Shown piece after piece: positions 23,858-62,402 of a stretch of DNA of 64,000 bases (within the stretch, counting starts at the first letter, position 1; the number at the start of each line of letters is the position of its first letter). This DNA is from Octopus sinensis (Eukaryota): NCBI RefSeq assembly GCF_006345805.1, contig NC_043008.1, positions 49,724,001-49,788,000 on the forward strand. Reading direction: 5' to 3'. The translations under genes were made by a program, and so were the position numbers. The notes beneath the pieces were generated by a model that ran no database searches, had not been told where the DNA came from, and worked only from the letters and a program-made list of their open reading frames with translations.

Positions 23858-24164
23858 TCAAATTGCCGTGATGTAATACGCTGATCCTGGATTTTGGTTT
23901 TCATATGGACCCCCAGGGTTTTGCTGTAGAGAGGATAATTGAAATCCAATTTCTTGGTCATAAACTGAGTCTGGATTTTGCGCGGCACACCGGATATTCT
24001 CTTCAGGAAAGGTTTCATAGACTTCATAATCTTGGCCAATTTCATCAACTTGATCAGCTTGGTCGATTTCATCAACTTTATCAGCTTGATTGACTTGGTT
24101 GACTTGACAGACTTGATGAGTTGGCATGTAATCTTTGCTTCTTTTGTTTTTGAGTATATTATAT
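23858..24164 (-). CDS. Receptor gene, right copy: terminal exon (cytoplasmic tail)
   Basis: Acceptor TATTGTCTATTGCAG. A phase-2 start completes the Arg codon from the TM exon. Reads YNILKNKRSKDYMPT...YENQNPGSAYYITAI-stop. Confidence 0.85.
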
Positions 24165-25299
24165 CTGCAATAGACAATATATGTGTGGTGAAAGGTATGT
24201 GTGTGGGTGTGTGCACATGCACACCTGTGTGCGTATATGTCTGTCTGTCTGTATGTATGTACAACTAGATGAAAACATCTCTCTCTTTCTCTCTCCCCAT
24301 TTCTCACTGATTTTTTTGCCCTGTGCATACAAACACCCACTTATATGTATGCATGCATATTTGTGTAAGTGTGCTTGTGTATGGGAATGCACGCTTGTTT
24401 GTGAGTATATATATATATATACAAAGCCCAATATGCCCATCATGAATACCCATCTGATAAGGGTACACCAGATCTATGCATCACAACCATATGTGTACAG
24501 CATGTTGATCTCATCAACATAAACAATACATGACCTTGCAGGTAAGGTCCAGTTAGAATTTTCTTCAGGTTGAGTAGCCTATCCTGCTCAAAAGATCCCC
24601 AAATAAGGTTTTTTTAAGGATGAACAAAACACCCATAGTTCCGGCGTGAATTATTCAAGCACCAAAGAATTCCCCTCAACACATGGCTATGATGCTCCCC
24701 CATTACTTCTGCTCATGATTAGAGATGCACATATTGTCAGCCACAAAAGCAAATAATGCTCAAGTAGTTAAGATCAAGCAACTGACGAGCAAATCTGTGG
24801 TATTGAGCAGAATATTTGCTGTAGTCCATCCTTTATAGCAAGGCAAAACAACATACATTTTATGATGCACAAAGGAAACGTTAGATCCTATTTTTTGATT
24901 ATCTGGTTCCTACTCAGCACTAGAGTAATGTGAAGTGAAGTGCTTTGCTCAAAAACACCACACACCACCCAATCTGGGAATTGAACCCATCATCTGACAA
25001 TCATGAATGCAACACACTAACCACTAGGCCATGCCTGATTGAAATCTTGAAAACTATTTCTGAGACATGCTCTGCAACAGCATCCTTTCTGTACATGGTG
25101 CATATCTTCCTGTAGGTTTCTGCTACTTTTCTTGTCTTGATTTTTAAAAATAAAACAGCGTGAGGTGTTGATAATTTTTGTTTTCAGTCTCCATTTTCAG
25201 AGTAGTCCTGAGCATGCAAAATACATCCTGTTTTCTCACAAGTTCACAGACTGAAGTTAGATAATCTATAATGATGTAAAGCACAAAATATCGCAAGGG

Positions 25300-25886
25300 A
25301 AGTGCTGCAAACCACCACAAACAACCTCCAAAGCAGGACTTTGCCTAAAGAAGATTATGTTTTCAGTTAGGTGGAACTGGAAAGATGTCATCTTTTATAC
25401 GCTACTTTGGACAGATAGGGCTATCAATTCTGATGTGTACCATAACCAGCTGGACAAATTAAATGCAGTGATCCACCAGAAGCATCCAGCACTTGCTAAT
25501 CATTAGGGTAATGTCTTTCATTAGGACAATGCCAGACTGCACACTTCTATGTAGACATGACAGAATTTACTAGGGATTGGCTGGGTTAATTTGCCACACC
25601 CTCAATATTCAAATATTGAACTGGTGCCTTCAGATTTCCACCTGTTTAAGTTTCTTCAAAATTCATTAAATGAACAGACCTTCAACTCTGAGGAGAATGT
25701 AAAAATTCATCATGAAAAGTTTTTATGCTAGTAAAGTCAAGAAATTCATCGAACAAGGTATAATGGATATTGGAAGATACTGGAACAAAAATATGATTAT
25801 ATCATTGATTGAATAAATCATTTTGTTTAAAACTTGTGCCTAATTTTTGATTAAAACTAGGCACAAGTTTTTTGGCCAATCCAATA
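25300..25886 (+). mobile_element. Decayed mariner element 3' half with right TIR
   Basis: PKKIMFSVRWNWK, FH*DNARLHTS and HPQYSN.ELVPSDFHLF motifs. TIR AAGTTTTTTGGCCAATCCAATA at about 25865-25886. Confidence 0.8.
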
Positions 25887-59058: not shown

Positions 59059-61126
59059 TCTTATTATAAAAGGCAGATTTTATCTGCCTCCCTTTGTAAC
59101 TTATAGAAATCTACAATATAGGATTTCTTCAATTACAATTTAGTTAGCATTTTTAAGAGTAGAATGCATCGGGTCATGCCAGGTCCAGTTTTTAAAATTT
59201 AAACTCCAATTAAGCAAAATTTACAGAAAACTCACATTCTGGTGTGTATGTCAAATGCTTTTCTTAATGTGGTTTACACCACACGCACACGCACACACAC
59301 AGTGTGCAACGAATAAAATGAAAGTAAATAGCGACAGAGTGATTTGAGGAAGACTAAACAGAAAGTATTTAAACCACTACTCAAAAAATAAAAAAACACA
59401 GCAAACAGAAACAAATAAATACATAACGATTTACTCCTCACACAATTTCTTCAATTAGAGTTTACCTAAGATTTTTGAAAGTACTCCATTCGGTCATGCC
59501 ATAATATATTTCTTTCAATTTCACAAAATTAAGACAAAATTCGAGAAAACTCAATATTTTAACATTTCACTCTGAAAGCATTGGCACAGGAGTGGCTGTG
59601 TGGTATGTAGCTTGCTAACCAGCCACATGGTTCCGGGTTCAGTCCCTCTGCGTGGCATCTTGGGCAAGTGTCTTCTGCTATAGCCCCGGGCCGACCAATG
59701 CCTTGTGGGTGGATTTGGTAGACGGAAACTGAAAGAAGCCTGTCGTATATATGTATATATATATAAGTGTGTGTGTATATGTTTGTGTGTCTGTAGTTTG
59801 TCCCCCTAGCATTGCTTGACAACCGATGCTGGTGTGTTTACGTCCCCGTCACTTAGCGGTTCGGCAAAAGAGACTGATAGAATAAGTACTGGGCTTACAA
59901 AGAATAAGTCCCGGGGTCGATTTGCTCGACTAAAGGCGGTGCTCCAGCATGGCCGCAGTCAAATGACTGAAACAAGTAAAAGAGTAAAAGAGTAAAGTAC
60001 ATGTGTGCATGCGTGAGTGTGTGTGTGTGTGTGTGTTTGATGGGTTGTGCGACACAGAAAGTGTGGTGTGTAAGTGAAGTGCTTTTGTTAGTGTGTGTAA
60101 AGAGACAGACAGAGTGAAAGACAGAAATAACTGAACTTTTTTTATTCACTTTTTGTAGTGAGTGACTGAGAGAGAAAAGAGAGAGAGAGGTTATGTATGC
60201 ATATATGTATGTATGGCTTCAGTGACACACACACAAAAACACATACCTACGTACACCTAAAGCACGCACACACACACACACACAAGCGGAGCGCGAACTT
60301 CAAAATTTTGGTAGTATTAATTTGCGAGCGTACTTCTAAGCGTGCGTAATTGAAAGTTTTTACTATGATATCATCACGTGCGAAAAAATTCGAAGGGTTT
60401 TGAACAATTGAGATACACATGTCACACCTGTATTGAAACCATTGCTAAGCTGCCGTAATTGCTTAATTAAGACTTTGTTTAAATTGAAAGGGGCAAATAT
60501 GTGACGAGGTTGAAAAAAAATACCCCAGAAAAAAAAATGTACTGCTGGTATTTATATAATTCACTACTATTTTGCTACAATGTCATGAAAAAGAAAAAAT
60601 TTAGGTATGTAAATCGAATTCGCCACTCCCTTTTCCCCGTTCGCGTTTGTGTAAAAAAAATTATTATTGAAGTTTTAAAAATTATTTACTTTGTTCAAAA
60701 AATATTAATATTAATTAATTTTCAAGAATTATTTAATTTTATTCTGTAAAATAGTAATTAAATCATTTATCTATAAATCCGCGAGGTTGTTACTCAGGCA
60801 CCTAGAATGGTAACCTTCAACTAACACTATCTCCTCCGAGACCCTGCGGCGCAAGTTGACCAAAATTGAGAGTATGGTAGAAGAAGGGTTGCTCTTCCTT
60901 CCGTAGAACATAAAATTCAAATCGGACCATGTTAACACCAAAAATTATTTACATCAAAAAGATGCTTTTTTCTATGAAAATCCCTATTTTTTACGATTTT
61001 TTCACTGCTGTGTTGCCACTTTTCGGTGTATTTCGACCAGAAAAATGTTCACAAAATTTTTACTTTTCAAAATTACAATTCCAGCGGGTTGAAACAAACC
61101 CGAGCAACGCCGGGCGATACTGCTAG
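59059..61126 (+). mobile_element. Helitron-like element, duplicate copy
   Basis: Same 2068-bp TC...hairpin...CTAG element as 1897..3964. Confidence 0.8.
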
Positions 61127-62205
61127 TATATATATATATATATATATATATATAATATATATATATATATATATATATATATATATATATATATATATAT
61201 ATATATATATATATATATATACATACACACACACACACACACACACACACACACACACATATATATATATATTATATATATATATATATATATATATATA
61301 TAATATATATATATATATATATATGTATATATGGACTGATAATATTGATCTTTGTTGTTGAGCATATTAATCTTACAATTGTTATGCCTCTTTGTGTGTA
61401 TGTGCGTGTTGGGGGTATGTACGTGTGCTGTATACAAGGATTTTAAAGATGAATGCAAGAAAAAGAAAGAAAAAAGAAAAGAATAAAATCATTTTTAAAG
61501 GAAAATATATGTATATATATATATATGTATGTGTGTTTGTGTTTGTTTGTCCCCACCACCATTGCTTGACAACTGTTGTTGTGCATTTACATCGCTATAA
61601 ACTAGCAGGTTGGCAGAAGAGACCAACAGAATAAGAACCAAGCTTACAAAGAAAAATTCCAGGAGTCAATTTCTTCAACTAAAAGCTGATTCTCCAGCAT
61701 GGCCATAGTCAATTTAAACAAAGTCTTAATTAAGCAATTACGGCAGCTTAGCAATGGTTTCAATACAGGCGTGACATGTGTATCTCAATTGTTCAAAACC
61801 CTTCGAATTTTTTCGCACGTGATGATGCATATAGCTTTTATTGCATAGTTCAGAGATAAAACTTATACAAAGGGCATTAAGTTCAATTCCTTATAGATGA
61901 AAACTTTCAAGCTCTTTGCATCCAAGTTTATATTCAAATATATGAATACCTGCAAAGAAAGCCAACTGTTACATAACTTTTGCTTTTCTGAAACAGCTGT
62001 CAAGTGAAGACATTACATAATTTCTTTATGTTTTTCTTTTTTTTAGAATGTGTGCTATGCTATTGGTGTTATAAAATACCAGTTTAATCTTATTTCATTT
62101 AAAATAGAATAAATTTTGATAAAATAGGTATATTAGTGTGTGTGTGTGTGTATGTGTGCATGTGCATACATATGTGTGTATGCGTGTGTGTTTTAATTTA
62201 CTTAC

Positions 62206-62402
62206 CTTATAAGCCTTAGGGTAAGGTAGCTTAATATAACTTGGTTTTTCTTCATCATTCAATTTAAATGTAATTTCAAAACATTTAGGATCTTTTGAAG
62301 CTGCCACTTCTCTTACGAATTTCTTGTTAAGAATCATGCGAACTGAAGAGCGATACACCACAGTATGACAAACTTTTACATCCCATATTGTGGCATGAGT
62401 AT
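62206..62402 (-). CDS. Receptor gene, right copy: domain-1 exon (197 bp, phase 1-0)
   Basis: Same splice sites as 5037..5233. Reads THATIWDVKVCHTVVYRSSVRMILNKKFVREV...EEKPSYIKLPYPKAYK. Confidence 0.85.

Follow-up and report, generated by a model that had tools for sequence, protein, structure and literature searches.

A tandemly duplicated gene of Octopus sinensis encodes a candidate recognition receptor of an octopod family

Among described receptor systems, the LILR, KIR and PirB proteins of vertebrates offer the closest parallel in organisation to the gene reported here. They are type I membrane proteins with several beta-sandwich ectodomains encoded by phase-1/phase-1 exon units, and they occur as tandem mosaic paralogues with membrane and soluble splice forms, tyrosine motifs in the tail and relaxed constraint, which in the octopus gene shows as a ratio of nonsynonymous to synonymous divergence (dN/dS) of ~0.5. 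A second point of comparison is the PLAT/LH2 domain (PF01477), found at the N terminus of animal lipoxygenases, at the C terminus of pancreatic and lipoprotein lipases and in Rab6IP1, where it serves as an accessory domain of a lipid enzyme or as a cytosolic domain. In lipases, PLAT domains bind lipoprotein or protein partners. A third is provided by the discoidin (F5-F8 type C) receptors, whose domains are all-beta and similar in size to those described below. Many genes in cephalopod genomes are restricted to a lineage and have no known role, and the cell-surface recognition repertoire of these animals, whether immune, chemotactile, gamete or neuronal, is poorly defined. Here we analyse LOC115218112 (gene A) of the octopus O. 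sinensis, which probably is one of two tandem, partly homogenised copies encoding a cell-surface recognition receptor of an octopod-only family. Its gene body occupies positions 23858-62402 on the minus strand of a 64,000-nucleotide (nt) stretch of chromosome CM016870.1 (assembly GCA_006345805.1), hereafter the window. Positions 1-18723 of the window were 100% identical to CM016870.1, and the record coordinate is 49,724,000 plus the window coordinate.

The exon chain is that of a real gene, and the model from which we started, a first-pass annotation made from the sequence, was about 90% right. That model had joined eleven intervals, all flanked by AG and GT, into 1,634 nt with one open frame and a single terminal TGA. 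As an exon reference we rebuilt exactly from DNA the RefSeq proteins of the O. bimaculoides orthologue and of LOC115217968 (gene B), the downstream neighbour and tandem duplicate of gene A, which has four RefSeq isoforms. Ten of the eleven exons matched the RefSeq-type models of both references in length and phase; the reference exon sizes are 55, 197, 88, 206, 94, 233, 94, 230/227, 100, 42, 64 and 259/310 nt (gene B/O. bimaculoides). The remaining interval, 56734-56680 (55 nt), did not survive the comparison. It is intronic, open and GT-AG flanked by chance, and is absent from all RefSeq isoforms and homologues. Its counterpart in gene B is 100% identical, yet used by no isoform, and in O. 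bimaculoides the donor GT has become TT, with conservation (~90%) equal to that of the surrounding intron. The true exon is an 88-nt, phase 0-1 exon with acceptor ttttag and donor gtaaga (exon 3 in Table 1). In a tblastn search with the gene B isoform XP_036363817 (P0001), residues 85-113 (AFVQNHHLHEMYVAKCQADCSTVDSELERW) aligned to 57968-57882 with 100% identity. Both intervals give an open frame because they have the same phases. In full, the frame of gene A comprises 12 coding exons, the first of which, encoding the signal peptide, lies past the end of the window at ~65836-65890. The signal-peptide exon that had been placed at 8723-8669 in the "next copy" is exactly the first coding exon of gene B, whose isoform X1 was rebuilt from the DNA; two further coding exons of gene B lie in the window at 5233-5037 and 832-745.

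The gene had also been described as unannotated, which holds for its six 3' exons only. Its five 5' exons are those of LOC115218112, since the RefSeq protein XP_029643761.1 (306 amino acids) consists of the gene A signal peptide followed by the first five exons of the model. This protein ends where the donor at 45508 is read through into the intron behind it (..DISK-VRIFTFLNSVFAFLF, then stop), which is intron 5 in the count of the eleven-exon chain used here for introns. Its coding sequence maps to window 45460-65890 and places the start codon of gene A ~1.9 kb past the window end.

With the corrected exon and the signal peptide, the predicted product has 573 amino acids and is laid out as a signal peptide, four modules of 95-115 residues (D1 to D4), a glycosylated stalk, one transmembrane helix and a 102-residue tail. 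The single strong transmembrane segment (residues ~446-471, Kyte-Doolittle 3.2) is followed by RYNILKNKRSK, and all six N-x-S/T sequons are N-terminal of it. By the positive-inside rule, a positively charged flank marks the cytoplasmic side of the membrane. The signal peptide, the sequons outside and the positive inner flank therefore support a type I membrane glycoprotein orientation, and the single-pass receptor topology first proposed for the gene was borne out by the signal peptide, the one transmembrane segment and the ectodomain sequons. Eight cysteines lie in the ectodomain, and their positions suggest four pairs (30/59, 100/104, 196/209 and 305/318). The last two pairs are the Y-x-C-x12-C endings that had been read from modules 2 and 3 (C196/C209 and C305/C318).

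Each module is encoded by a phase 1-0 plus a phase 0-1 exon, as had been seen in the first pass (in the corrected model 197+88, 206+94, 233+94 and 230+112 nt), with phase-1 module boundaries and an internal phase-0 intron in all four. Symmetric phase-1/phase-1 units are the arrangement typical of shuffled extracellular modules. The module 4 pair measures 230+112 nt in gene A, 230+100 nt in gene B and 227+100 nt in O. bimaculoides. Abutting the donor of the D4 short exon in gene A is a 12-nt in-frame tandem duplication (GAATAACAAAAG twice, encoding ITKG-ITKG; 34178-34201, minus strand), which is absent from gene B and O. bimaculoides. The description of the modules as four divergent repeats stood in part. 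It is backed by the exon architecture and by predicted all-beta secondary structure, and found no backing at the level of sequence, where HHalign comparisons of every pair of the four domains gave a probability below 1% and hence no internal sequence homology. The exon architecture suggests a common origin of the four modules, and further support comes from the paralogues P0003 and P0004, in which module 2 is duplicated.

To place gene A among known proteins, we combined several searches. A word-indexed protein search returned 19 proteins with E-values from 5.5e-238 to 1.8e-69, all from O. sinensis, O. vulgaris or O. bimaculoides. A hidden Markov model (HMM) search of 1.84 billion representatives at E <= 0.001 returned 30 proteins, and those it added, where the source was looked up, came from Octopus species, from Argonauta hians (two full-length homologues) and from unnamed Logan contigs. 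The source was looked up for 23 of the 30, all of which proved to be octopod; the other seven are short fragments whose source was not looked up. Among the homologues with a looked-up source, none from these 1.84 billion representatives came from a squid, a cuttlefish, another mollusc or another animal. O. sinensis itself has at least ten family loci, several of them on CM016870.1 at 43.5, 49.7-49.8 and 51.6 Mb. Gene A belongs with these proteins by full-length collinear similarity and by a shared invariant motif that closes module 3, T..(L)TGEEYGC-x12-C...K, and the invariant columns of the family are N168, C177, C190, W198, T276, E282, Y284, G285, C286, C299 and K305. Judged by these matches, the genes form a small uncharacterised family confined to Octopoda (Octopus and Argonauta), and the suggestion that the receptor is lineage-specific agrees with a distribution restricted to octopods among the matches whose source was looked up. 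That it falls into no named family was also upheld, the Pfam, PDB sequence and literature searches all being empty: searches of the literature by LOC identifiers and by topic found no paper naming these genes, and no clear orthologue among well-characterised conserved genes was found in the protein, Pfam or PDB searches. One Logan contig (L003, from SRR11869391) was considered as a transcript and set aside; it contains one D4-like exon only, with at most 69% identity (to P0005), and we read it as octopod genomic DNA.

The fold of the ectodomain was approached by structure prediction and Foldseek, carried out for module 3 alone and for the full-length protein. The AlphaFold2 target was the gene B isoform P0001, which is 90-98% identical to gene A across the four ectodomain modules. 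In the full-length model the ectodomain is all-beta and made up of four units, each of 7-9 strands, at a predicted local distance difference test score (pLDDT) of mostly 70-88, and module 3 modelled alone has eight strands and a pLDDT of 81.5. Searched against the PDB, D3 gave PLAT/LH2 domains of unrelated proteins as its top consistent matches, with template-modelling (TM) scores of 0.54-0.62 and root-mean-square deviations (rmsd) of 4.4-5.6 Å. These were the PLAT domains of 5-lipoxygenase (TM 0.61-0.62, rmsd 4.4 Å), lipoprotein lipase (TM 0.59-0.60), pancreatic lipase-related protein 2 (TM 0.56) and Rab6IP1 (TM 0.54), together with those of 12- and 15-lipoxygenases, all at a Foldseek probability of 0.9-1.0 (0.97-1.00 for the four proteins named first). 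A single non-PLAT match reached a probability of at least 0.9 (PI3K-C2alpha, probability 0.93, TM 0.39), and C2 domains fitted D3 far worse (TM ~0.38). With the full-length model, lipase PLAT domains were the sole matches at a probability of at least 0.9, the remainder being mostly long, meaningless alignments with TM ~0.1.

Module 3 is thus predicted to be shaped like an eight-stranded PLAT/LH2 sandwich. The predicted D3 sandwich of ~110 residues superposes on PLAT domains but differs from them in several respects. First, it has no PF01477 sequence match and its Foldseek E-values are weak. Second, it ends in a C-x12-C hairpin cysteine pair; we know of no such pair in PLAT domains. Third, the modules here are tandem and extracellular in a type I protein, unlike the accessory or cytosolic setting of PLAT. 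Since the sequence criterion fails, membership of module 3 in the PLAT family is not established. Other Pfam matches were limited to weak, transmembrane-driven ones (TMEM154, Insulin_TMD, RIFIN and Glycophorin_A), and a profile search of PDB sequences yielded nothing beyond noise from the transmembrane segment, with no sequence relative.

Two other folds had been raised for domain 3 in the first pass, a discoidin jelly-roll and an immunoglobulin (Ig)-like sandwich, and neither was recovered. Despite the similar domain size and all-beta character, there was no PF00754 match and no discoidin in the Foldseek top 50 for either D3 or the full-length model. For the Ig-like alternative, there was no Ig match in Pfam and none in the Foldseek top 50 for D3. 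The immunoglobulin superfamily is also rejected on the cysteines, since the D2 and D3 pairs lie 12 residues apart in the last hairpin, compared with ~55-75 for a B-F disulfide. LILRB3/PirB did appear among the matches to the full-length model, at TM 0.10-0.13 and probability <0.3, and were discarded. The octopod domains therefore differ from those of LILR, KIR and PirB in not being Ig domains (no Pfam Ig match, no B-F disulfide, no credible fold match). The label "Vitellogenin domain-containing protein" carried in UniRef by O. bimaculoides isoform X2 (XP_014775780.1) was likewise unsupported by the Pfam, PDB sequence and fold searches.

The cytoplasmic tail of gene A contains the tyrosine motifs DYMPT, DYEVYETF, SVYDQEI, PYENQN and AYYITAI (tyrosines 473, 484, 518, 521, 540, 559, 568 and 569), all conserved in the O. 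bimaculoides orthologue. By composition, the earlier term "Tyr-rich" is weak, with 7.8% tyrosine in the tail versus 6.4% in the ectodomain; the firmer observation is the conservation of the tail's motifs. At the position of PYEN, Y-[AES]-N is aligned in O. bimaculoides (PYENEN) and in seven of the other tail-bearing paralogues, in forms including YANM, YSNM, YENL, YANT and YENS, and the others have one Y-E-H and one K-S-K. In six family members a distal Y-x-x-L (YEDL, YEEL, YWGL) is aligned ~15-17 residues after the YxN; neither gene A nor its O. bimaculoides orthologue has it. Some paralogues have a YxN...YxxL pair ~15-17 apart, or YSDL-x4-YEEL, at spacings that are not canonical. Phosphorylated YxN (pYxN) is a Grb2/Drk-type SH2 site and pYxxL/I suits SH2 domains of the Src/Syk/Shp type, and YxxPhi is also an AP-2 sorting signal. 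The conserved Y-x-N is consistent with a putative docking site of the Grb2/Drk type.

In one Argonauta hians homologue the sequence DIEQLYTQPI is repeated ~5 times, and NPDIEQFYTQLI, at 23802-23767 on the minus strand, is a relic of DIEQLYTQPI that lies out of frame just past the stop of gene A and is still coding in the paralogue P0005. A frameshift or stop has therefore shortened the tail of the gene A lineage. In the O. bimaculoides locus (L002, 45739-45939), a second, diverged copy of the tail, 63% identical to residues 487-559 of P0024, could be an alternative 3' exon or a relic. It is located ~2.5 kb beyond the 3'-most exon annotated for the orthologue.

These tail motifs also bear on a different view of the protein, in which it would passively mediate adhesion or matrix contact, or act as a receptor for endocytic cargo, and its tail tyrosines are YxxPhi signals for AP-2 and not phosphotyrosine docking sites. 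YETF in gene A, which is YETL in O. bimaculoides, fits YxxPhi, the tail has neither a canonical ITAM nor a canonical ITIM, and the PLAT-like shape of D3 recalls the lipase domains that bind lipoprotein or protein partners. However, the aligned Y-x-N, which is of Grb2 type and is no sorting signal, recurs in most of the paralogues that bear a tail, and the repeated DIEQLYTQPI of Argonauta fits multi-site docking better. We consider such a passive or endocytic role possible but doubtful, and favour a recognition receptor with a signalling tail.

Membrane and soluble products are annotated side by side at the neighbouring gene. We reproduced the four RefSeq models of gene B from the DNA. Of these, isoform X1 is the membrane form. 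Isoform X2 skips the 64-nt transmembrane exon and X3 skips both the 42-nt and the 64-nt exon, in each case with a shift of frame and loss of the transmembrane segment; X4 uses an alternative terminal exon and has no transmembrane segment. The products of some paralogues end in ...ITKGIWCF, resembling read-through at the module-4 donor of gene B, and may arise by read-through at the same donor. Soluble forms are therefore predicted, at the level of annotation, in several family members.

Gene A and gene B share a 17.1-kb block of 99.3% identity. It begins ~285 bp before the ATG, ends shortly after the D2 short exon and takes in promoter-proximal sequence along with five coding exons, those for the signal peptide, D1 and D2. 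In the window this is visible as a repeat in which 57137-64000 matches 1-6832 with a period of 57,136 bp. Outside the block the two genes are far less alike. Upstream they are ~97% identical, the intron between the D2 short and D3 long exons (exon 4-exon 5 of the eleven-exon chain) measures 3.4 kb in A and 0.8 kb in B, and the tails are 52% identical with a 12-residue indel, compared with 82% between the gene A tail and that of O. bimaculoides. It is gene B whose tail has lost several tyrosines and 12 residues. Over the transmembrane region and tail, synonymous divergence (dS) between A and B is 0.19-0.30. In the tail, dS is lower between A and O. bimaculoides (0.20) than between A and B (0.30), whereas in D4 the A-B value is 0.06 versus 0.15-0.20 to O. 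bimaculoides (0.15 for A). From the near-identical 5' block, the diverged 3' halves and the discordant dS of tail and D4, we infer recurrent gene conversion or unequal exchange among tandem paralogues as the source of this mosaic pattern.

An identity of 99.3% is within the range of allelic divergence in such genomes, and because it extends over 17.1 kb including introns, genes A and B might be two haplotypes of a single locus that were falsely placed in tandem by the assembly. This is very improbable. The divergence outside the block, with tails at 52% identity plus a 12-residue indel and a dS of 0.19-0.30, is far beyond allelic; the introns differ in size, the array described below occurs only in A, and the upstream identity drops to ~97%; and the gene A tail resembles that of O. 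bimaculoides more than that of gene B. We therefore treat A and B as tandem duplicates.

The receptor had been proposed to be fast-evolving. Pairwise Nei-Gojobori estimates give an overall dN/dS of ~0.5-0.6, and module 1 is the most divergent from O. bimaculoides (64% identity, dN 0.22), so that evolution is relatively fast, short of formal evidence for positive selection. Conservation is highest in module 3 (95% identity, dS 0.04), and the 3' exons of gene A are constrained, dN/dS against O. bimaculoides being 0.34 in D4, 0.50 across the transmembrane region and 0.43 in the tail. Across the 6.87 kb of the block that is seen twice in the window, A and B differ by 31 substitutions. Six of these fall in the 197-nt D1 long exon (62206-62402 versus 5037-5233) and all six are nonsynonymous, while the 88-nt exon has none. 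The density in the D1 long exon is ~8x background (Poisson P ~2e-4), although the 6:0 ratio of nonsynonymous to synonymous changes alone is not significant (P ~0.25). Selection favouring change in module 1 could explain the excess in D1, as could a short tract converted from a third paralogue. A further 16 substitutions form a second cluster, in non-coding sequence at ~61137-61636.

The intron that follows the D3 long exon of gene A (intron 5) contains a nested tandem array (Table 1). It holds eight further copies of the 233-nt D3 long exon (nt 2-233), 97.4-99.6% identical to the first, which start at 44979, 44139, 43384, 42618, 41865, 41116, 40328 and 39425. Copies 2-9 begin at exon nt 2 right after ...TGAATTCTG and have no AG acceptor, and three of them carry frameshifts. 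After each copy come ~5-9 units of an 81-bp repeat, in which the final 33 nt of the exon are joined to the initial 48 nt of the intron. As a consequence the donor, CAAA followed by GTAAGAATTTTC, occurs 59 times between 38781 and 45511, the real donor included, where 0 would be expected, and the RefSeq model of gene A ends inside the array (..DISKVRIFTFLNSVFAFLF, then stop). In gene B and in the O. bimaculoides orthologue the array is absent, and their introns are ~800-840 bp without the repeat. Given this absence and the near-identity of the copies, the array is a very recent amplification specific to gene A.

Nine tandem copies of an exon, of a length that is not a multiple of 3 so that the inclusion of two would break the frame, recall Dscam-like mutually exclusive exons, which would diversify domain 3. 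Such a role is extremely improbable here. Copies 2-9 are without an AG acceptor, and use of the only nearby AG, in CTTGAG, leads to a frameshift and early stop; three copies are frameshifted, and the intact ones differ from copy 1 by no more than two residues, which leaves almost no diversity to select from; and neither gene B nor O. bimaculoides has the cluster. With no acceptors of their own and frames that are not all intact, the copies were rejected as a Dscam-like exon cluster.

A weightier alternative is that gene A is a recently disabled duplicate, in which the array causes read-through or premature termination in intron 5 and the gene yields no more than a secreted fragment of 306 residues covering D1, D2 and part of D3, or else no functional product; too little time would have passed for its six 3' exons to decay. 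In line with this, XP_029643761.1 ends in ..DISKVRIFTFLNSVFAFLF and a stop, its frame having run past the donor of the D3 long exon into the first 81-bp unit, the array is young and missing from gene B and O. bimaculoides, its eight acceptor-less pseudo-exons come with 58 decoy donors, and no database protein carries gene A's own 3' half. On the other hand, the first copy retains a normal acceptor and donor, the acceptor at 37835 and ~920 bp of ancestral intron are intact, and donors without an upstream acceptor need not disturb splicing. Annotation pipelines commonly shorten models at repeat arrays. Moreover, the 3' exons are without stops or frameshifts, and the ancestral tyrosine tail is kept better than in gene B (82% versus 52%). 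We give disablement appreciable weight, at somewhat less than an even chance, and hold to a cell-surface receptor of the octopod family as the better account of gene A.

Under the recognition-receptor reading, the protein would sit on the cell surface and use its variable N-terminal modules to bind an extracellular ligand, be it another cell, a microbe or a surface of lipid or protein. Its tail tyrosines would be phosphorylated and recruit SH2 adaptors, YxN those of the Grb2/Drk type and YxxF/L those of the Src/Syk/Shp type or, alternatively, AP-2 for sorting. Soluble isoforms would act as decoys or opsonin-like forms, and the family would diversify as exon pairs are duplicated, as genes are duplicated in tandem and through gene conversion. 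The very recent 6.7-kb amplification of the D3 long exon and its donor may at present compromise gene A. The word "recognition" in this account is drawn from the anatomy of the protein and should be taken as a putative role.

Several observations weigh against this reading. First, dN/dS was below 1 in every interval with synonymous changes, giving no formal evidence of positive selection. Second, the tail of gene A has no canonical immunoreceptor tyrosine-based activation motif (ITAM, YxxL/I-x6-12-YxxL/I) or inhibition motif (ITIM, [SIVL]xYxx[ILV]), and the YxxF/L motifs could serve endocytosis rather than signalling. Third, the PLAT resemblance comes with Foldseek E-values of only 0.02-0.1 and with models built from shallow alignments (16-19 sequences), and Pfam-A hmmscan at E up to 10 found no PLAT domain (PF01477) in the gene A protein or in 19 family members. 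Lastly, the six 3' exons of gene A (37835 to 23858) were found in no protein of a 15-billion-protein collection. Since RefSeq has only the 306-residue product and no protein has gene A's own C-terminal half, the full-length product may not be made today.

Table 1. Features of gene A and gene B in the window (positions in window coordinates).
Feature	Position	Strand	Basis or remark
Gene A exon 2, D1 start (THATIWDVKV...KAYK)	62206-62402	minus	AG/GT flanks, frame; identical to XP_029643761.1
Gene A exon 3, D1 end AFVQNHHLHEMYVAKCQADCSTVDSELER, 88 nt	57881-57968	minus	100% to XP_036363817; conserved in gene B and O. bimaculoides
Rejected exon (intron sequence)	56680-56734	minus	In no isoform or homologue; TT donor in O. 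bimaculoides
Gene A exon 4, D2 long, 206 nt	50182-50387	minus	98.6% to P0001 residues 115-183; same length in both references
Gene A exon 5, D2 short, 94 nt, Y-S-C-x12-C	49163-49256	minus	Splice flanks and homologues
Gene A exon 6, D3 long, 233 nt	45508-45740	minus	Sole copy of nine with polypyrimidine/AG acceptor
Nested tandem array, 6.7 kb	38758-45507	minus	5' end of the intron after the D3 long exon
Gene A exon 7, D3 short, 94 nt, EEYGC-x12-C	37742-37835	minus	Splice flanks and homologues
Gene A exon 8, D4 long, 230 nt	34394-34623	minus	Splice flanks and homologues
Gene A exon 9, D4 short, 112 nt	34178-34289	minus	100 nt in gene B and O. bimaculoides
Gene A exon 10, stalk, 42 nt (EKLHRNETNVSIII), two N-glycosylation sequons	30661-30702	minus	Splice flanks and homologues
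Gene A exon 11, transmembrane, 64 nt	26922-26985	minus	Splice flanks, hydropathy
Gene A exon 12, cytoplasmic tail and stop	23858-24164	minus	Tail 82% identical to O. bimaculoides X1 tail
Gene A share of the A-B block	49056-64000		99.2-99.3% identical
Gene B first coding exon, signal peptide MLLLSFSSMLVFILIHFT	8669-8723	minus	Isoform X1 rebuilt residue for residue
Gene B coding exon 2, D1 long	5037-5233	minus	6 substitutions vs gene A copy, all nonsynonymous
Gene B coding exon 3, 88 nt	745-832	minus	Identical to 57881-57968

The window also contains mobile elements and simple repeats. A non-LTR (non-long-terminal-repeat) retrotransposon at 52565-55326 (minus strand) lies in intron 2 on the gene strand and is found in both gene copies; its frames encode an endonuclease of 274 amino acids (Exo_endo_phos) and a reverse transcriptase of 567 amino acids (RVT_1), and the GC-rich stretch at 52-56 kb is due to this element. 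On either side of the 42-nt stalk exon, the introns hold a reverse-transcriptase fragment (RVT_1 plus a weak PHD match; 32051-33136, plus strand) and a fragment of a Tc1/mariner-type transposase (HTH_Tnp_Tc3_2; 27988-28512, plus strand). Long microsatellites of the (TA/CA) type at 13746-14311, 1462-1875 and 58598-59143 give rise to spurious YIYIYI open reading frames of 130-180 amino acids.

Taken as a whole, the analysis overturns no principle; its use lies in annotation and in pointing to a gene to follow up, and it is not a discovery in itself. What it adds is a corrected full-length gene model, the restriction of the family to octopods, a structural lead in the form of extracellular PLAT-like modules, and a set of conserved tail motifs. 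Of more general interest are the 17-kb homogenised tract, within which six substitutions in D1 all change the amino acid, and the young amplification of an exon together with its 5' splice site. A further-reaching idea, which we regard as unlikely but worth stating, is that octopods evolved their own recognition receptors by combining PLAT-like modules with phosphotyrosine/SH2 signalling and with soluble forms that arise when the transmembrane exon is skipped, as a functional analogue of the LILR/KIR clusters; the likeness to those clusters, whose canonical ITIM and ITAM motifs are missing here, is one of organisation and not of homology. If this were true, the intron-5 array in LOC115218112 would show module duplication while it is under way, and the family would represent non-Ig receptors in an animal whose immune and self/non-self receptors are largely unknown.

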